This document shows positions 3-16,056 of a stretch of DNA of 64,000 bases, piece after piece. The DNA is from Utricularia gibba (Eukaryota; Plantae; Magnoliophyta), in contig NEEC01000008.1 of the NCBI GenBank assembly GCA_002189035.1, positions 1,302,001 through 1,366,000 of the forward strand, in the 5' to 3' direction. The translations under genes and the position numbers were made by a program. The notes beneath the pieces are model-generated. The model was not told where the DNA came from. It saw only the letters and a program-made list of their open reading frames with translations, and made no database searches. Position 1 is the first letter of the stretch, and every line of letters begins with the position of its first letter.

Positions 3-572
3 AAGAGGAAGAAATTCGCCTTCCTGTTCAAGCGGCGCGATTCGGGGATCTCTCCAGAGGATTCCTCCCGCGGAAAATGGACTACGTGCTCGGAGTCCAG
101 TTCTGTGGCGAAATCGAACTCATTCGTGGGAACGGAGGAGTATCTGGCACCGGAAATCATCCTCGGCGACGGCCACGATTTCGCCGTCGATTGGTGGTGC
201 CTAGGGGTCGTGCTCTACGAGATGCTCTACGGTACGACGCCGTTTCGAGGAGCTAACCGAAGGGACATCTTCAGTCGAATCCTCAAAAAAGCACCGGATT
301 TAACGGGGAACGCGACGCCGTTAAGGGACCTCATCGGTAAATTACTGGAGAAGGATCCCAGGAAAAGGATCGACGTTGGGGGAATCAAAAGGCACGAGTT
401 TTTCGAGGCGGTAGATTGGGGTTCAGTTACTGAAATGCCCAGGCCGCCGTTTATTCCCGAGCTAACAGACGTCGAGGTCATGATGGGAAATAAGGAAATA
501 AATGTGGAGACTTTCGTCCACGAGGTGTTCACCCTTGACAACATGACGGAATACCAACGACCTATGGGCTAG
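3..572 (+). CDS. UCN: AGC2-subfamily Ser/Thr kinase, UNICORN/UCNL-like; 3' part only (frame open from the window start)
   Basis: Motifs SNSFVGTEEYLAPEII, GHDFAVDWWCLGVVLYEMLYGTTPFRG, LLEKDPRKRI and a C-terminal PPF motif. The GDGHDFAVDWW..TPFRG.NR stretch matches UCN/UCNL as I recall them. Frame is open from position 3 to TAG 570-572. Confidence 0.8.
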   Translation, partial: KRKKFAFLFKRRDSGISPEDSSRGKWTTCSESSSVAKSNSFVGTEEYLAPEIILGDGHDFAVDWWCLGVVLYEMLYGTTPFRGANRRDIFSRILKKAPDLTGNATPLRDLIGKLLEKDPRKRIDVGGIKRHEFFEAVDWGSVTEMPRPPFIPELTDVEVMMGNKEINVETFVHEVFTLDNMTEYQRPMG

Positions 573-1633
573 CAGTGATAATTCAGCCCACCCAAGATAA
601 CAACGAGGGCCCTCTCCACAAAAAGGGGAAAAAATGATAAAAAAAAAGAGGAATATGCTTTTTTTTAGCATATGTTTGTAATTACTACTATTTTACTGTC
701 GTTGAACTTTTCCTTCATTCTAACTTCATGCATAGAAGAAGATTTCAGCTTATGCAGTTTCCGCAGTAATGCAACGCACGTGCTTTTAGTAATTAATGAA
801 GGGTATCTTTGATTTGAAATGATAATTGATTAAATAATAAAATATATTAAATAAGATATTCATACTTTAGCACACATATTTATCAATGTATATGTAAAAC
901 AATAATATATTTCATTAATTTATTTAAAATAAATATACCAAAACTTGTATAACTAAAAAAATTATATGAAATGATACAAATTTAAAGAATAAATTTACAG
1001 ATTTTTAAAAAATCCCAATTAAAGTGGTAAAAAAAATTACAAATGTGGCTATGGGAGGAGTGCGCATCTTGGGATTTTTGAACAATGTTGGGCATCTGGT
1101 GCAGATAAGTGACGGGAGGGGGGCCATTGAATGGAGAGCATCTATTTCTAGGTGGGCATTAAGTGAGCGCCCACGGGACAATTCCACCTCTGGACTCCCA
1201 TTCTTCAATGCGTCAACGACTCCTCTCTTTCCTCTTAATGTCATCACCTCTTCCTAATAAATGAATCCTGCTGCCACGTCTTTCCATGCACTTACCACTA
1301 ATCTCAAGTTCTAATTTTAATAGTATTTTTTTATATTGTAACGGCCAAGAATCGTCGTCTCCACACACCAAGGATGCGATCGGACTGATCTCCCGTTCCC
1401 TGACCATCTGATAGCATAAACAGAAAAACAGAATTAAAATATAATTGATTAGTAAAATTAATATGAAGAAATAGTTTTGAAATAGAGGATTGAATGAGTT
1501 ATGCAATAGAAATCATGAATATGTCTATGAAATAGGTATTGTTCTTTTTATTCTTTTTTTCTATTTTTTACATATAAATATACATATTTTTTTAAAAAAA
1601 ATGATATTAAAAATATTGTGGTATCTAAAGTTA

Positions 1634-1676
1634 GGCCCACCTGGCTGAGCCCAAACAAACCAGCGGCCTGGGCCCT
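1634..1676 (+). promoter_or_regulatory. Site II (TGGGCY/GGCCCA) cluster, likely the ancestral DHDPS promoter
   Basis: GGCCCA, AGCCCA and TGGGCC within about 45 bp, upstream of the DHDPS remnant. Confidence 0.45.
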
Positions 1677-1783
1677 AGGGCACACTTACGAATGAAGAGG
1701 AAGATCTTTTCGTGCTCCCGGGCTTTTCTATGGGGGTTGTTTCTCGTTGGATTTCTACTGTCCAGATACCTCTGATTCCTGGA

Positions 1784-2374
1784 ATGGCGATAGCCATTGG
1801 TTTCTGCTCTTTCAAGGCTACTCGTCTGTTGCTTTGTCCAGTTAGCTTCGTCAATGCAAGAATTTTTTTGGTATGTTTTGGAGCAGCCGCTCGGTGATGT
1901 TGGTATATTGATACGATTAGCTTATTTTGGGTTGTTTTTGTAGATATGCCTGTTCATATTTGTAGCTGCTTGCTTTTGTTGCTTTGTAGAATATTTAAAA
2001 TGGTATCCTGTATGTGAGATGGTTCCTCGTGTTTGCAGAGCAAATGCTGATGCGATAAAGGCCATTAGATTGATAACTGCGACCTAATCTCCGTATCTTC
2101 CAGATGGAAGATTTGACCTTGGGGCCTATGATACATTGTCGGGGGCACCACTGGCGAAGGCCAACTAATGAGCTGGGACGAGCATATTATGCTGATTGCT
2201 CACACAGTGAACTGTTTTGTTGGACATGTCAAAGTCATTGGCAACATCGGTAGCAACTCAACCAGAGAAGCTATTCATGCTACAGAACAAGGCTTTGCTG
2301 TTGGTATGCATCCAGCGGTGCACATCAACAATTATTATGGGAAAATCTCGACAGAGGGTATAGTTTCCCACTTT
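1784..2374 (+). pseudogene. DHDPS: Dihydrodipicolinate synthase (DHDPS/dapA) pseudogene fragment, 3'-truncated
   Basis: After acceptor TTTGCAG (2038) the sequence reads [32 protein letters not shown], frameshifts, then reads [62 protein letters not shown]. This matches plant DHDPS. In-frame TAA at 2085-2087; about 13 codons missing at 2135-2138; homology stops near 2374. The putative transit-peptide exon from ATG 1784 is less certain. Confidence 0.9.
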
Positions 2375-2535
2375 GCTGTTGGGATTCGACTTAAGATTTT
2401 TTTTTTTATTTTTATGGAAGAAAGTTATGAAAATAAGCGAAGGATAAGTTACTTCGTGTTCAGTAGCTTCACTGGCTTGTGTGTTTCAGGAAACGGGAAT
2501 TAGGGTTTGGAATCTTTCCCTTTTGGTCCTGCGTA

Positions 2536-4090
2536 ATGAGGACTGCCGGAATATTCGCCGGCATATTTCTCTTGCTGGCGCTTTACTGCGCCGTCGACCC
2601 ATTGAATCACTCCGTCATGTCGAGATTTCCTGGATTTGAGGTGCTTGAGGTGCAGATGCCACCATGGTCGGAAATCCCAGTTGCCAGTGACTCCGAAGAC
2701 GCTCTGCAGAAATCAGAAATCAAGTTCTTGAATCAAGTTCAGGGGCCCGAGAGTTTAGCCTTTGACCCAAGTGGCCGCGGACCGTACACCGGCGTTGCTG
2801 ACGGTAGGATTCTCTTCTGGGATGGACGGGAATGGATTGTGTTTGCGTATACTTCAGCTAATCGGTAAGATTTTTTCGCAAGATCCTCTGAATTGACATG
2901 GATAGCATTCACTTCTTTCCTTCATTGATCATTCCATTGGAGGGTGTAAGTTTGCTGTCTTTCTCGTATGGATGGATGCCTTGTTGTTTTTGGATTTCTG
3001 ATGAAGGTTATCAATTCCCTGGAACACCTTGGATTATCTCATGGAACTGGATTGTTTCTTGTACCCATTTCCTGGCAGCTCCGAGGGACTTTGCGACCCG
3101 AAATCAACAATCATCGAGTACGCCGAAAACGAGCACATCTGTGGCAGGCCTCTGGGTCTGAGATTTGACAAAAGAAATGGCGATTTGTATATAGCCGATG
3201 CATATTTCGGGCTTATGAAAGTCGGCCCTGAAGGCGGACTAGCCACTTCCCTGACTACTGAAGCAGAAGGTGTTCCCCTGGGATTTACGAACGACTTAGA
3301 CATTGATGAACAGGGGAACGTCTATTTTACCGATAGCAGCACCACCTACGGGAGGAGGTCGTGTTTATTCAAGAGATGCCCGGTGGAACCAACACCATTT
3401 GTTACTAACAAAACTTTGTTTGTTTCAGGAACTATTTACAAAAGTTTTTGACTGCAGAGGATGATGGAAGACTCCTCAAGTACAATCCCACAGCAAAAGA
3501 GACCTCTGTTCTGGTACGAAATCTTCAATTCCCAAACGGAGTGTCTCTCAGCAAGGACGGTTCTTTTCTTGTGTTCTGTGAGCTTTCTACTGCCAGGTAC
3601 ATCCTTATATAACGGAATCCAAATCTCGTGCTGACAATGACCTATCTCTCATGTACCTCTGTATCTAAACCGGATTAGGTTGATCAAATATTGGCTAAAG
3701 GGTGAGAAGACTGGAACTTCCGAAACCATAGCCGCGTTTCCTGGTTTCCCAGACAACATCCGGATGAACAAAAACGGTGACTTTTGGGTGGCAATGCATT
3801 GTCGTAGGAGGTGGTACACTCATCGCTTGTGGCAGAGCCCCATGCTCCGGAAGCTGTTGCTGAAGCTTCCCGTCCTGGGAAAGATCCATTATCTGATTCA
3901 TTTAGGAGGCCGGCATCACGGAATGGTTGTCAAGTACAGTGATGAAGGTAAGATGCTGAGGATTCTAGAAGATAAGGAAGGGAAAGTTGTGCGTGCAGTG
4001 AGCGAAGTGGAGGAGAGAGATGGCAGACTGTGGATGGGGAGTGTTTTGGAGCACTCCATTGCTGTGTATCACCTGGATTCCGATCCATAA
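2536..4090 (+). CDS. SSL3: Strictosidine synthase-like protein (SSL3-like), copy a; exons 2536-2864, 3079-3357, 3429-3596, 3679-4090
   Basis: VQGPESLAFDP.GRGPYTGVADGR, CGRPLGLRFDK, FTNDLDID, NLQFPNG.SLSKDGSF, GFPDNIR, VSEVEERDGRLWMGSV. GT-AG junctions keep the frame; no lesions seen. Confidence 0.93.
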
Positions 4091-4300
4091 AGACTACAAG
4101 ATTTCATCTTCTTCCCACTGCTGCTGCTGTAACATGATCTGCTTCCCTCTTCAACGTTGCAGATTGATTTGGCGAAGCGCTGCTGTAACATGGATTCGCT
4201 TGAACCTCTTTTCCTGAGAAACTTCGAAATTAACCAGAAACCCTAAAAAATTATAATTCCACCGAACATCACTATTTTTTTTATTATTTTTCTCTAGGAA

Positions 4301-6010
4301 TTATCCATCGTCCTTCAGAAAGCTCCGGTGCACATTCTTCAACTGAAACAACGAGAAAAAAGAAACACAGAAGCGAAAAGCGAGCACAACCACAACCACA
4401 ACCACATCAGTCTCCTGTCTTTGAACTTCAACGAAAATAAGAGCAGTTGCAGCAGGCGCCACGAAGCGCGCAAGGAAAAGCGTTGTTTCTTCCCTCAGAC
4501 ATGATCCAAGCTACCTAAAATGCGTATCAGAGCTCTCTCTCTCTCAACACTGTTGAGGGTAAACAACAAATGATTAGAAGCGGCATGTAGTCAGAATTTG
4601 GAGGTGTGTAAGAATCGTGGGATTATCAGCATAAACCTAGATATTCCTGTTTTCAATTTTGACACAGTATAAACGCAGCACCTAAAAACAGTGTCCAAAT
4701 ACCGGGACGATCACGTACTTGGAATCCTTGGTGTTGAAGAGATGGGATGGAGCTCTCCATGTTGACAGAGAACAGCTTCGCGCAGTGCCCACATCTCACG
4801 GTTACAATCGTGAACATGCTCCCCCACGGAACACTCACCTGCTCCAGTCGAACCAATATAAAAACCCTAAACCCCAAAACACTGTTCCCAACTAAAAACC
4901 CGAAACCCCAAATAGTGAGTGTAAGTAAAACGCACACCACTTTATTAGTATTATGTGATTCATCTCCGAATCATCACCTAGTGGTTGTTGGTGGTTATTA
5001 CACACATATTATATACAAAAGCGTGCATTCATTATCATCACGTCTAGTGGTGTGCATGTGCATGACTTTTTCTGCTGGTCAAGACACCATTTCCGATGAT
5101 CACTTTATCTGAAGGTCTGTGTGAGGGAATGGATGATGATGATAAAACAAGGAGGGAATGAATAAATGCTGCAGATCTATCGAGCACAGATGTTTGCAGC
5201 ATCTCTAGGGTCTGAGAAATAGGAAGGAAATCTACATGAATGAATGATTTTATCAAGAGGAAGAGGAGGGAGAGAGAGAGAAGACAGTGACTGGACATCA
5301 AGAGGATCGATCAAGGGGCCATTGAGATGAAGAAAGAATCATCTATCAGCCTGCGCCATATCTGCATTTTTCGTTAAAGCTTACCCCTTTTTCAAACATG
5401 GGGTAAAGTGAAAAAAAAAAAAAACACAACATGGGATTTCACAGCGATTCAGCTCTGAAAGAAAAAAGAAACAGTTATTCTTGGTCAAGGAAAATGATTG
5501 AGGATCATGGATGTGCTTCAGAAACTACGTAGCACAGAATTTAACAAGATTCCCAGAGTGTTGAATTGAGAACTAATCACAAAAATGAATAGATATAATG
5601 CTAGTAATCTATTTGTTAAGTTTGAAATACGCAAAGCTTATCTAGTAAACTGCAACGGAATCATCAGATCTATCCGATCATGAACTCAAAAAAGAACAGA
5701 CTAAAAACCGCACGGTCACTCCTGGTTTCTAGGGTTTTTGGAACAACAGAAAACCATAGCTAACACAGATGGTTCAGATCTTTTTTGTTTTCTCCAGGGT
5801 GAGAAACATGAAACATCGCTCTGTTAACAAGAATGAATCGGATTCAAAAAGGACTATTTTTGTGTTCTCTCACAGGATTAATTCTCTGTGTTCTCTATCT
5901 CACGTGAAGCTTTAAAAAGTAATCGGAAGAAGAAGAATTACCGCGAGAACAGTGTTGCAGAAGCCGCAGTAAACATAGCAGACTCGTTCCGCGGTTATTT
6001 CCTTGGACAT
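4301..6010 (-). CDS. Truncated YABBY (C2C2 zinc finger only, no YABBY domain); exons 6010-5942 and 4838-4719, putative terminal exon 4342-4301
   Basis: Exon 1 [23 protein letters not shown]|GT; exon 2 AG|[27 protein letters not shown]...FQ|GT. No [19 protein letters not shown] or WAHFP exons found before the convergent SSL copy a. The terminal exon (LKNVHRSFLKDDG*) is inferred from a strong U-rich acceptor. Could be a pseudogene. Confidence 0.75.
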
Positions 6011-7565
6011 TCTCAGCTCCGAGATCTCTCTAAACTTCCCACGTATGTTTTATGACCCAAAGAAACTGAAGCTTTTCGTTTAGAACCTTTCAAACTCTGA
6101 ATCAGACCCTTCAGAAGAGCAAGGCGAATTCTTTCAGCTCCGAGACAGATAAGAAATGGAGGAAAAGAAATATATATTTATATATAAAGCAAATGGATAC
6201 AAGTATGTGTCAAGCAAGTGTATGTATAGGTTTCAGAAGTTAGCATTTAGCGCACAAGTGGTCATTGTTGTGCCACACACTGATGCATTGTGTAGAGTTT
6301 GAGATCGATGAGGGATCAGCCCACATTTGGAGCACATCGGACCAGGAAAAAGGATCCATTCTCCAGCATTTTCTGTGGTAAATATCGCATACCATCCCAT
6401 CGCTTTGACCCTTTAAATCCCTTGAATTCGAAAAAAAAAAAAAATACAATTTTAGTACATCCGGTTGGAAACCCTCGTTTTTTTTTGTGGTGATAGGAAA
6501 TATTCCAATAATCATTACTAGATGTTGATAGTATATTTTAGAAGATTTGTGTTCAAGATTACATATAAATCATTGTTTAATTAACTAATATATATATATT
6601 AATCGTATACGGTTATACTATTCACATATTTATTTTTGACCATGTGAATAGTATAGTCTGATCATTTGGGCTGGGCTGCATAATCTGATCAATTTACAAA
6701 TTTATTACACTCATCACATGATTTCACAAGTGGAGGGGAAGGTGAGGGAAGGTTAATTGTATGTATACCATAATATGTTTTTTCATTTATACTCTATTGA
6801 TTATTATATATTATACTTATATTCTAATATATCAAATACATAATTTTTTATATAACTTATAATTAATTATATACATACCCAATTTCATTATATTTAAATA
6901 TACTAATACTCTATTATTAAACGATCTATTAATAGTCAAAAAAATAATTTATTTGAATTATTTCTATTTAAATAAATATATTATATATAGTTAAAATTGA
7001 AAGTATGTTTGTTTTCTAGGTCTATAAATGTAAAAGAAGAGTTTTCAAAAAAATATAATTGAAAGTAAGGCAATGTCCACACTATGAGGACTTAATCGCA
7101 TACAATTTGAGGTCTACGAACTTTTTACAAATGACATATGATTATACAACTAATTAACATACATAATTTTCAGACATGTATGTTTGGAAGCGTAAATCCA
7201 CCAATCAAACGTGACCTTGTTCAATTTGGGAGTATAGTACGATTTGTACCCAATGACTATAGGGTGGGAAGATTTAGGGTTTACCACTAAAAAAATAAAA
7301 TACTTATTTAAAAAATACATGAGGTAGAAGTGACAGTCAGCACCTTCATGTATGAAACGTCGTCGTATATCCGGGTTCCAGTCATGTGAACAAGGGTTGC
7401 AAGTTCATTTGGTGCAGAGGTTGGCAATTCTTGTGTTTTGAATTGTCTTTTATACACATGTTTCCTACTTCACCATCGTCAACAACATTTTATTCCGGTA
7501 ATAAACAGTGCAGAGTTCACCTGTTCACAAAGAAGACGATGTTCTGGAGATCTAGAAGGTTAGCT

Positions 7566-9088
7566 TCACTCTAACTGATAAACAGCAATGAACTGAGTTA
7601 ACACGCTCCCCATCCAGAGCTTCCCGTTCCTCTCTTCAACTTCACTTACAGCTCGAACCACTTTGCCTGGTTTGTCTTCTAAAATCCTAAGAATCTTTCC
7701 TTCCGGACTATACTTCACAACTACCGCGTGTACGGTGCCTCCAATGTGTATCAGATAATGGAGCTTCGGAGTGAGGGGGACCTTCAGCCATAGGTTCCGT
7801 ATGCTCGGGTGCTCGGCCAGGAAATGGGCAGACTTCGTCCTACGACAATGTACTGCAACCCAGAAGTCGCCATCTTCGTTTGTTCGAACGTTGTCAGGAA
7901 ACCCGGGTAGGATAGCCATGGCTTCCCTGGTTCCAGCCTTTTCGCCCTTCAACCAGTACTTGCTCAACCTTCAAGGGCAAAGTAAAAGAGAATGACTGAC
8001 CATTGCGGACATTGTTTGCCGATTGTGTGTACTATATATTACCTGCCACGAGAACCTTCACAGAATACAAGGAATGAGCCGTCCTTGCTGAGGGAAACGC
8101 CATTCGGAAACTGAAGATTTCGAACAAGAACTGTGGTTTCTTTAGTTGCAGGGTCGTACTTGAGGAGTCTCCCACTATCATCTGCAGTGAAAACCAGCTG
8201 CAGAAAGTTCCTGAAATGGTTTAGAATTTTCTCAGCTATCCATTCTCATGCATACTGTTGTCAAATGTATTCATCATTCAGGTCAACAAAAAGCAATGGT
8301 CAAATCAAACCTTCTTCTGTAAATGAAGCTGCTATCAGTAAAATAGATGTTCCCATGTTCATCAACGTCCAAGTCATTTGTAAATCCTAGAGGAACTCCC
8401 TCTGCTTCAGTGGTTAGTGGAGTCGCTAAGCCGCCTTCAGGCCCGACTTTCATAAGCCCGAAATACGCATCAGCTATATACAAATCACCATTCCTTTTGT
8501 CAAATCTCAGCCCCAAAGGCCTTCCACATATGTGCTCGTTTTTCACATAGTGAAAAATTGATGGTTTGTGATCACATAGCCCTTCAGAGCTGCATTTTAG
8601 GAACCATTTTTCAACAGCCAAGACAACAACAAGAAAACAGAAAGTGGTTTTCACACCCGGCATAATCTCATAGAGCATATAAGAAGTGTAATTGTGGCGC
8701 TTAAGCGGGCAATTGGAAGGATGCTTAGGGTTTCAGAAAGAGGATTGTTACCGATTAGCAGAAGTAAAAGCAAAATCAGACCACTTCTCCCCATCCCAGA
8801 AGATGACCCTGCCATCCGCGACGCCGGTATACGGACCACGGCCCATTGCGTCGAATGCTAAACTCTCCGGCCCCTGCACCTCATTCAAGAACTTAACTTC
8901 CGATTTCTGGAGAAGATTCTCAGAATCACTCTCAATCGGAACTTCCGACCAATCCGGCATTTCCGCTCTAAGCATTTTGTAATCTTGAAACCCCGACATC
9001 CCAGCATGGTTGAAGGATCCACCGCGCAGTAAACCGCTAAAAGGAGACATATTATCCCGGAAACAGCCCCCGCAGCAGCAGCTGACAT
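7566..9088 (-). CDS. SSL3: Strictosidine synthase-like protein (SSL3-like), copy b; exons 9088-8752, 8589-8311, 8210-8043, 7968-7566; -1 frameshift near 9013
   Basis: Same motifs and identical internal exon sizes (279 and 168 nt) as copy a. N-terminus MSAAAAGAVSGIICLLLAVYCAVDP joins FNHAGMSGFQDYK only if one T is added at 9013-9014 (likely consensus error). Confidence 0.9.
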
Positions 9089-13667: not shown

Positions 13668-16056
13668 ATGTCTTCAGAAATGACCACAGAGCGCGTTTGT
13701 TATGTTTACTGCGGCTTCTGCAACACCATTCTCGCGGTATTTTTTACTATTTTTTTAATTGAATTCTTCCTGCCTTTTGAGTGCTGTTGCGTCTGAATTT
13801 TTTCGTGTGTCTACATAAACTGGGATCTTCTCCTTCTCTACTTCTTCCTCCACCTTCGTTGCTGTTCCTTTGTAAATACTGATAAAGAAAAAGGTATGCG
13901 GTGAGGAAATCTATGGCGCTTGTTAATACACATTTATAGAATGCTTGAAAAAACCCTCTTTTTGGAAGTTGTGAATTTTCTGAGGAAATAGATCTATGGT
14001 TTCCGATTTGATATTCATGGAAAAAGAGAGATCCTTGTATTGGTGGGGTGGAAAGATGAAGAACCCTAGTTTTTTTTCATAATTGTAACTGTTAGGGGAC
14101 AAATGGGCAAAATAAAGCCCTAATATTCTCAAAAACGCTTTCCGTAATCAATTGATATCTGATGCAGCTGTGGTCTTCGTATTCAGTACAAGAATGTATG
14201 CCTCCCTTCGCCCAAAATATTGTTGTCTGAAAAAACTGGAACTCAAAAACGCACCTTCCACTTTGTGTTGGTTTGTGGAGAAAAAGCTTTGATCTGTGGG
14301 CACGCACTTACACTGTTTCTTTCTGGTTTCTGCTTCTGTGGGCTATTGAGTTCTGTGCTGTTTCAATAGCCCTAACTGTCAATTCCTTTTTTATCGTTTT
14401 TCACAACACCCAGCTTTTCCCTTCTCCAAGATCCTTCTGCGATGAATGCCTCTGTGTGTTTTACCGTCTGTAAAAAGTAACTTATCATGCAGATAGATAG
14501 ATTAGAATATGATACACCGTTGATTGGTCATTCTTACGATGAATTCTGCTCAAGTCAAGTCATTTTCTTGCTCTCTTTCCTCTCAATTCTCACGCTAAAA
14601 GAAAGAAAAAAAAAGGGAGTGGGAGAATTGATCAGTAGTGCTGTTGTCAGAACAGTAGAAAATAAGAGCCACTCGTGAATAAAGATCTTATCTATGTTGT
14701 AATTTGTTAAAAAAATTTGGGGTTTAGGGTTTTCTTCCCTTTTTTTTAACTTTATCACCAGTTTTCAATGTGGCTTAAGATGCTAATGTTGAGCAGGTTA
14801 GTGTTCCATGGGGAGCATGTTCACAATTGTGACTGTAAGATGTGGGCACTGCGCTAATCTCCTTTCTGTCAACATGGGCGCTTCTCTTCAGCCCCTTCAT
14901 CATCTCCAAGAATTCCAAGTATGTTTTCGCCATGGATCCATCTCTTGACCTTCCATTTTCACACACACTAAAGCAAGATTGTAAGTTGCAGCTTTGATTT
15001 TACCCAAAGCATTCCATCTTCCAAATTCCATGTTTCTCTTCATCTTCTTCCATGTATTAAGTTGCTAACACATGATTTGTCGTATCTCCAAGCTCCTAAA
15101 GCAGCAATCCATGATGGAAGCTGCTGTAAGAGAAGGTGCTTCCTCCTCCAAGTTCAACCGGTTCGGCTCCTTCCACCCGAATCCTCCGAAGATGATGCCG
15201 CCTCCTATCCGTCGTAAGTATCATCACAGTGCGTTTAACTCTTTCTGAATCACACCCTTGTCAAAGGGAAATCAAGTGTAACACAAATGGGGAGCACCAA
15301 CTCATTAATGTTAATCTTGTTGTTTTTATGGCCTGTTTTTGACTGTGACACTGCGGTGGATAACCTCTCAGCTGCGAACACTAGCTGCACAGCTCTAGTA
15401 CCTTCTGTGCTTCCCAATCTCCCTTTATTCACAAGCCTTTAAGACACCCCAACCCCCTCTCCCTCACACAGGCCTTGCCCGAACACCTAGATTCCTAACA
15501 TAGGATTAACCCTGGTTTGTATTGTGTCGCAGCTCCAGAGAAAAGGCAACGTGTTCCCTCGGCGTACAACCGTTTCATAAGGTATGTCGTCACCTGTTTC
15601 TCACGTGCTGATGCAGTTCTAACACGACAGGGATTCCTTATTGCACAGGGAGGAGATTCAGAGGATCAAGGCAAACAATCCAGAGATCAGCCACCGTGAA
15701 GCTTTTAGCACAGCTGCCAAGAACGTAAGTATTTTAAATTATAATAAATAAATAAATGCTCCCCCACTTGTAGCCATTCAGACATGATGATCCATTTATG
15801 GGTAACTTGTCCAGGTTTATTTATGTCGAAATAGTTATCTACATTAAATTGCAATTAATACGATTACGAAATATGATTTTTTTATTATTTAGGAAAAAAG
15901 GACACGATCAATTTTTTAAATAATCTTGAATTGCTTGTATGATTTCACATGCAGTGGGCCCACTTCCCCCATACTCACTTTGGAGATGGCAACAAACAAG
16001 GCAAGGACCACCTCCCAGTTGCAGGAGAACCAACCAGCAACGCCTTTGGTTGCTAG
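13668..16056 (+). CDS. YAB2: YABBY2-like transcription factor; exons 13668-13736, 14797-14918, 15093-15213, 15533-15581, 15649-15724, 15955-16056; -1 frameshift at G-run 14810-14813
   Basis: [16 protein letters not shown] / [14 protein letters not shown] / [16 protein letters not shown] / [25 protein letters not shown] / [17 protein letters not shown]. Canonical 49- and 76-nt exons. The DGNKQGK tail is YAB2-type. Confidence 0.9.

Follow-up and report, generated by a model that had tools for sequence, protein, structure and literature searches.

Can a plant transcription factor gene that has lost its DNA-binding domain persist as a gene in its own right, and what would its remaining domain then do? 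This question is raised by a truncated YABBY gene on the minus strand of a 64,000-nucleotide (nt) stretch of Utricularia gibba DNA (GenBank assembly GCA_002189035.1, contig NEEC01000008.1, positions 1,302,001 to 1,366,000; hereafter the window, whose own numbering is used for all positions). A sequence-only reading of this DNA had taken the gene for a candidate zinc-finger-only microProtein of about 76 amino acids (aa) sitting beside its parent gene. We find that the truncated YABBY is a real, expressed gene, with a transcript start, introns and a poly(A) site of its own. Comparative analysis suggests that the locus is a selectively maintained gene and a new candidate trans-microProtein, for which translation and partner binding are predicted.

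The transcript was examined with contigs of four RNA runs aligned to positions 300-6250 of the window (5951 letters); runs X1 and X2 belong to one study (P1) and X5 to another (P2). Contigs from these three runs delineate a spliced, polyadenylated mRNA of about 624 nt on the minus strand, composed of three exons. Transcription starts at approximately 6146-6158, as contigs reach 6153 in X1, 6158 in X2 and 6146 in X5, where adapter-like loose letters follow, and the 5' untranslated region (UTR) occupies 6011..6153. Exon 1 as a whole spans 6153-5942 in the RNA contigs; its coding part (5942..6010, minus strand) opens with the ATG at 6010, comprises 23 codons for the first half of the C2C2 finger, and is followed by a GT donor after 5942. 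Intron 1 (4839..5941, minus strand; 1103 nt) is of the GT..AG type, appearing as CT..AC on the plus strand, and its removal is recorded by the joint 4838/5942 in X1, X2 and X5. Exon 2 (4719..4838, minus strand), with an AG acceptor before 4838 and a GT donor after 4719, adds 40 codons for the second half of the finger. Intron 2 (4550..4718, minus strand; 169 nt, GT..AG) is bridged by the joint 4549/4719 in the same three runs at a depth of 21-25. In each of these runs a single contig spans both joints, 5942 to 4838 and 4719 to 4549. The intactness of exons 1 and 2 and their canonical splice sites, which had been read from the letters, are thus confirmed by RNA.

The third exon turned out to be a different one from that proposed. 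Exon 3 (4258..4549, minus strand) begins at 4549 with TGT TGA, encoding Cys64 and the stop codon (4549-4544), and continues as a 3' UTR of about 286 nt, with unbroken coverage from 4549 to 4257/4262 in X1, X2 and X5. The poly(A) site lies at about 4257-4262: the X5 contig has a poly-T loose end before 4257, and the X1 and X2 contigs stop at the same place. Neither the acceptor at 4343 nor the tail LKNVHRSFLKDDG* that it would have supplied (4301..4342, minus strand) can be upheld; three RNA contigs join 4719 to 4549, and this segment sits within the true 3' UTR, where no separate exon is seen in the RNA contigs. The depth of 21-25 for the truncated YABBY compares with 12-27 for a neighboring strictosidine-synthase-like gene, SSLa, in the same runs. 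Since the bins 897-1294 and 5275-5871, which are intergenic and intronic, have zero depth in all runs, genomic DNA carry-over is negligible and is not the source of these contigs.

Some minor features of the transcript data should be recorded here. RNA contigs also cover part of intron 1 (4842-5245) at 3-5x versus 21-25x for the mature mRNA (X1 and X2), one of them with an extra G after 5124; they probably represent unspliced precursor. Within the 3' UTR, two differences from the window were found, G to A at 4384 in X5 and T to C at 4438 in X5 and X9, and these are probably strain polymorphisms. The coding exons have no listed differences, and a piece of the X5 contig over exon 2 has one unlisted mismatch.

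The open reading frame (ORF) starts at the first AUG of the mRNA, where position -3 is an A, and no other ORF in the 624-nt transcript is longer; no upstream ATG occurs in the 5' UTR. According to the general rule, a stop codon in the last exon does not trigger nonsense-mediated decay. The stop codon here lies in the last exon, so such decay would not be expected for this mRNA. The predicted product has 64 aa, 63 residues from exons 1-2 plus the Cys from exon 3, and is therefore shorter than the 76-aa protein first envisaged. It matches the Pfam domain YABBY_N (PF24868) over residues 6-57 with 95.7 bits (E=1.2e-27), a higher score than that of the full-length paralog described below. All finger cysteines (C11, C15, C18, C39 and C42) are kept, in agreement with the sequence-only reading, and nearly all finger columns that are invariant among 120 YAB2 proteins are retained. 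Five replacements, N44K, L46F, G51E, Q55P and D61G, are unique to the truncated protein and fall at positions that are near-invariant in the same 120 proteins. The protein has no Pfam match to the YABBY/HMG domain. A tblastn search with the full paralog protein found YABBY-domain exons within the window solely in the paralog, at 15533-16056, and none from the truncated copy to the window start, so the reported absence of the DNA-binding exons holds.

Is this small ORF maintained? Codons of exons 1-2 from the two Utricularia copies were aligned with those of Sesamum, Erythranthe, Castilleja, Orobanche and Genlisea, a frame break in the paralog being masked with N, and a GY94-type branch model was fitted using our own implementation. 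The alignment comprises 63 codons with synonymous sites near saturation, and a single accession of U. gibba represents the genus. The ratio of nonsynonymous to synonymous rates (omega) on the truncated branch was estimated at 0.20 (0.19-0.20 across sets), with a profile interval of about 0.08-0.54; the background value was 0.13, and the difference between the two was not significant (p=0.43). Neutral evolution of the truncated branch (omega=1) was rejected in the main set, with twice the log-likelihood difference (2dlnL) at 8.14 (p=0.004), and three taxon/topology sets gave 2dlnL of 8.1-8.9 (p 0.003-0.004).

The changes are unevenly distributed along the protein. After parsimony polarisation, the finger core (aa 8-43) has accumulated on the truncated branch seven synonymous changes and one replacement, the conservative I21V, whereas its flanks have accumulated five synonymous and 12 replacement changes. 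In the flanks of the paralog branch, six synonymous and two replacement changes were counted. The core departs from neutrality (binomial p=1.7e-4), the flanks of the truncated branch are neutral-like (p=0.26), and core and flanks differ from each other on this branch (Fisher p=0.011). Not a single indel or stop is present in the 189 coding nt, while the introns of both copies have diverged beyond alignment. According to a Poisson bound that we calculated from the core counts, a fully neutral phase would have filled less than about 20% of the truncated branch. A core that stayed constant while post-finger residues changed thus fits selection on the finger only, and not a very recent truncation or a dead copy. 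As judged from these codon comparisons, the finger core is held by purifying selection on the gene's own branch, and the surrounding residues have drifted. Purifying selection had already been deduced from the 14 synonymous-only and six non-synonymous codon differences between the two copies within the first 50 codons, a count that was exactly reproduced with codon 29 masked (where the G run of the paralog is 1 nt shorter); on the truncated branch the deduction stands for the finger core, and the flanks evolve near neutrally.

The origin of the gene is indicated by a second YABBY gene 7.6 kb away. This full-length YAB2-clade paralog, YAB-b (13668..16056, plus strand; exons 13668-13736, 14797 or 14802 to 14918, 15093-15213, 15533-15581, 15649-15724 and 15955-16056), encodes 177 aa with Pfam domains YABBY_N and YABBY, and its best database match is Sesamum YAB2 (70% identity). 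The nearest proteins to the truncated fragment overall are YAB2 of Lamiales, with Orobanche, Castilleja and Genlisea sequences coming closest. Exon DNA identity between the two copies is 81% in exon 1 and 80% in exon 2, and similarity ends 6-9 nt from the splice sites. The introns, including intron 1, give no alignment; intron 2 plus exon 3 against the paralog reaches a local alignment score of 21, compared with a shuffle mean of 21.8, and comparisons of the exon 3 region with the rest of the window and of promoter with promoter yield low-complexity matches only. Divergence between the copies amounts to 1.02 synonymous (dS) and 0.12 nonsynonymous (dN) substitutions per site (NG86). Gene conversion was considered as a source of the exon similarity and is ruled out by the dS of about 1, with introns, promoter and exon 3 unalignable. 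Three residues, Y14, G16 and W28, are common only to the truncated copy and YAB-b, G16 occurring in none of 120 YAB2-like proteins, and the two copies are therefore sisters within this lineage. In Erythranthe, an SSL gene stands head-to-head with YAB2, matching the arrangement of SSLb(-) and YAB-b(+) here; YAB-b therefore holds the ancestral position and the truncated gene is derived. Taken together, the sequence comparisons indicate that the truncated gene is an old partial duplicate of the neighboring YAB2-clade gene. It is driven by a promoter of its own, and its splicing still uses the donor sites of the two introns inherited from the ancestral gene.

The parent itself presents an unusual feature. 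At 14810-14813, exon 2 of YAB-b has a run of four G, against five in the truncated copy, and the outgroups are in frame. As assembled, splicing at the canonical acceptor (14797) leads to a frame break and a stop after about 34 aa, whereas splicing at a cryptic acceptor (gttag) 5 nt further on, with exon 2 starting at 14802, brings the gene back into frame, converts VSVPW to CSM and makes the finger loop two residues shorter. Either an error of assembly in the homopolymer or a genuine lesion could account for the frame break. Downstream of it, the exons are undamaged and seem to be under constraint (fitted omega about 0.05), although this value is not significantly below background (p=0.20). 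The idea that the parent gene lies alongside is sound as regards a full YAB2-clade paralog close by, with the reservation that, in the assembly, use of the canonical exon-2 acceptor throws this paralog out of frame.

MicroProteins of the trans type arise through gene duplication followed by domain loss (PMC5381583, PMC9638782), as small single-domain proteins with their own genes that are kept by selection instead of decaying. Here, a 64-aa product carrying YABBY_N alone is predicted from a separate transcript, next to a 177-aa two-domain paralog; its omega of about 0.2 is an average over the whole branch from 63 codons, and both the nearest proteins (Lamiales YAB2) and the residues held in common with the adjacent full gene point to the YAB2 clade. 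We tentatively propose that the product may quite possibly work as a trans-microProtein decoy for partners of the YABBY finger. In this model, the 64-aa finger protein would be produced in the cell and, at about 7 kDa, could enter the nucleus without the lost nuclear localization signal (NLS); small truncated fusions of the YABBY protein CRC still reach nuclei (PMC6019494). Lacking the HMG-like YABBY domain, it could not bind DNA as a full YABBY does. It would instead occupy the surfaces to which full-length vegetative YABBYs normally dock with their zinc finger, possibly those of other YABBYs or of cofactors such as LEUNIG-type co-repressors and TCPs, so that the activity of YABBY complexes would be damped or redirected. 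The replacements N44K and L46F, located just past the last cysteine, may have tuned partner choice. A passage of PMC3520853, citing Kanaya 2001 and Stahle 2009, attributes to the finger the homo- and heterodimerisation of vegetative YABs as well as other interactions. The full paralog is represented in RNA runs including X1, X3 and X9, which also carry the truncated gene, with word shares of up to 0.25, near the exonic fraction.

Several observations weigh against this proposal. Support for the product is at the mRNA level. The omega estimate comes from 63 codons and a self-written codon model, and averages the whole post-duplication branch, so that a truncation within its last 20% or so would be compatible with it. 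N44K and L46F alter residues that are invariant in YAB2, which could equally mean that the ancestral binding surface was lost. No ortholog of the truncated gene was found in any other species, close relatives being outside the search. For CRC, dimerisation and the NLS reside in the YABBY domain; bimolecular fluorescence complementation revealed no interaction of the isolated finger (PMC6019494). Likewise, the finger of CmYAB1 alone shows little or no TCP binding, although a fragment without the YABBY domain does bind TCP (PMC11445500). The role of the YABBY finger in dimerisation is thus contested, with PMC3520853 and PMC6019494 in conflict. The central idea of the original microProtein reading is now better supported than before, by a separate, spliced and polyadenylated gene whose finger core appears to be under selection; its size and third exon were wrong, and the finger as a dimerisation surface is disputed.

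The strongest rival, unlikely in our judgment but a serious contender, is that the locus is a transcribed gene relic, in which promoter and splice sites survive, an acceptor and a poly(A) site are fortuitous, RNA and peptide are functionless, and the ORF is intact through recent truncation or chance. The loss of the DNA-binding domain and NLS, the neutral-like rate of the flanks, the replacement of the invariant N44 and L46, and an exon 3 of unrelated sequence that adds a single codon are all what such a relic would look like. Short YABBY_N-only models are moreover common annotation fragments in other plants, and the missing ortholog (with close relatives outside the search) agrees with it as well. 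Against a relic stand the seven synonymous changes to one conservative replacement in the core, the rejection of omega=1, and 189 nt that have remained free of indels and stops beside unalignable introns. The Poisson bound makes it unlikely that neutral evolution lasted for more than about 20% of the branch, and expression is on par with that of a neighboring gene in two independent studies.

A functional finger-only protein that acts outside YABBY complexes is improbable. Such a neofunctionalised small zinc-ribbon protein might bind nucleic acid or have acquired a new partner after N44K/L46F. It draws on the same selection evidence as the decoy proposal, and the unique substitutions in the post-finger motif and the absence of YABBY-YABBY contacts for the CRC finger (PMC6019494) would suit it. 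In addition, when the best four runs per study are compared, P2 yields X5-X8 for the truncated gene but X10-X12 and X14 for the full paralog, which hints that the two genes partly differ in expression; being limited to those best four runs, this contrast is weak. Furthermore, an isolated YABBY finger has no known independent partner or activity.

An RNA-only locus, for example a regulatory transcript convergent with the SSL gene, is very improbable: the 3' end of the mRNA does abut that of SSLa on the opposite strand, but any overlap between the transcripts does not exceed a few bases, and a finger in which synonymous changes far outnumber replacements bears the signature of protein coding, not of an RNA function. 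It is scarcely credible that the gene is not truncated at all, with YABBY-domain exons beyond the window or lost in assembly and the short mRNA a minor isoform, for even though visible downstream DNA amounts to only 4.3 kb and no RNA contigs bridge 4260, the mature mRNA is polyadenylated at about 4257 in X5 (the X1 and X2 contigs also end there), the exon 2/exon 3 joints lead nowhere else, the downstream DNA is taken by an expressed opposite-strand gene, and no YABBY-domain remnants exist in the window besides the paralog.

If the decoy proposal is correct, the nearest known system would be that of LITTLE ZIPPER (ZPR) and HD-ZIPIII. Both involve a separate small gene encoding one interaction-type domain of a leaf-polarity factor without its DNA-binding domain, and the proposed action in both is the formation of non-productive complexes. 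They differ in that ZPRs use a leucine zipper, whereas the truncated YABBY has a C2C2 finger whose dimerising role is disputed and is known from one genome. The dimerising role of the ZPR leucine zipper is firmly established, conservation of ZPRs extends throughout the seed plants, and their genetics are proven. MINI ZINC FINGER (MIF) proteins, which are among the known microProteins (PMC5381583), offer a second parallel, being finger-only derivatives of a two-domain plant transcription factor family, ZF-HD, that combines a zinc finger with a DNA-binding domain. MIFs, however, have a different fold and family (the ZF-HD dimerisation region as opposed to YABBY_N) and form a conserved family, whereas the truncated YABBY is a lineage-specific partial duplicate. 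Compared with full-length YAB2 of Sesamum, Erythranthe and Antirrhinum, its N-terminal 63 residues are homologous and the exon boundaries 1/2 and 2/3 identical; it differs by being without the linker, the YABBY/HMG-like domain and the NLS, and by the replacements at N44, L46, G51, Q55 and D61.

No YABBY microProtein is described in two reviews (PMC5381583, PMC9638782), in a cereal survey (PMC7534434) or in the results of full-text literature searches. A protein search with the earlier 76-aa model among proteins of 42-133 aa returned no candidate, and such a blank is uninformative. Finger-only YABBY models without the YABBY domain do exist in databases, namely in Helianthus annuus (94 aa), Cuscuta campestris (95 aa), Orobanche gracilis (62 aa) and Sphagnum (78 aa). 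None of them has been characterised, and RNA and selection evidence has been assembled for the truncated Utricularia gene alone. At least the O. gracilis model, unlike the Utricularia gene, belongs to a longer locus, whose exon 3 is found 7 kb downstream. In Nicotiana and Populus, YAB2 isoforms of 139-150 aa also have no YABBY domain, but they are splice isoforms of full genes and hence of the cis type.

That the gene is the first YABBY-derived trans-microProtein, a 64-aa zinc-finger decoy from a Lamiales lineage that tunes abaxial and lamina YABBY complexes in Utricularia, is a broader claim, and we regard it as rather doubtful. If true, such a decoy would be the counterpart of ZPR/HD-ZIPIII at the other pole of the leaf-polarity network, would give the abaxial and lamina-outgrowth programme an additional, post-translational level of control, and would act in a plant whose leaves have been remodelled into filiform organs and traps. 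For HD-ZIPIII, ZF-HD, bHLH, B-box and MYB factors, microProteins that arose by duplication and domain loss are established as regulators. The truncated YABBY sits in a system in which shifts of polarity-gene activity switch leaf form, as stated for the bladderwort in a passage of PMC7661387 that summarises Whitewoods 2020. A finger-only YABBY is also a natural reagent for asking what the YABBY zinc finger binds and whether or not it is a dimerisation surface.

The genes surrounding the truncated YABBY bear on how it lost its exons 3-6. SSLa (2448..4261, plus strand), a strictosidine-synthase-like gene with an ORF of 395 aa, is represented by spliced contigs in the RNA data, where X5 shows poly(A) at 4173; it is convergent with the truncated YABBY, and the 3' ends of the two genes abut. 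Its paralog SSLb (7569..9014, minus strand), located by tblastn, shares the strand of the truncated YABBY and lies immediately upstream of it. The dS between SSLa and SSLb is 1.66. Their 3' coding ends form a 125-nt inverted repeat (3947-4071 and 7576-7700; 74% complementary), and the two genes are placed tail to tail around the truncated YABBY. The resulting gene order is SSLa(+), truncated YABBY(-), SSLb(-), YAB-b(+). One tandem or inverted duplication of an ancestral SSL(-)/YAB2(+) pair cannot yield this order and was rejected, and at least two rearrangements are therefore needed, one of which presumably removed exons 3-6. Capture by a Pack-MULE was also considered and rejected: no transposon-type terminal inverted repeats were found, the sole long inverted pair being the SSL 3' coding ends. 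In Sesamum and Erythranthe, YAB2 is followed by a ubiquitin-protease gene; the window has no such gene at 16-32 kb, and synteny is therefore limited to the SSL/YAB2 pair. No SSL gene was found within 6-8 kb of the YAB2 loci of Orobanchaceae or Genlisea.

Unusual YABBY sequences were also encountered outside Utricularia. Three Sphagnum proteins (P0145, P0276 and P0277), annotated at 78 aa except for one of 144 aa, have a YABBY N-terminal domain, which is unexpected, since mosses are generally said to lack YABBY genes. Two parasitic Orobanchaceae, Castilleja and Orobanche, both have unusual-looking YAB2-like loci. In Castilleja foliolosa (L003:6001-16413), the locus has exons 1-3 and no YABBY-domain exons within 8 kb downstream, and in O. 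gracilis (L001:8001-17793) the first Cys codon of the finger is missing and exon 3 lies 7 kb past exon 2. The YAB2-like gene of Genlisea aurea (L002:1070-2515) has a very divergent finger (C11S; RCGHC changed to RCERC) and a long branch, together with a normal start of the YABBY domain.

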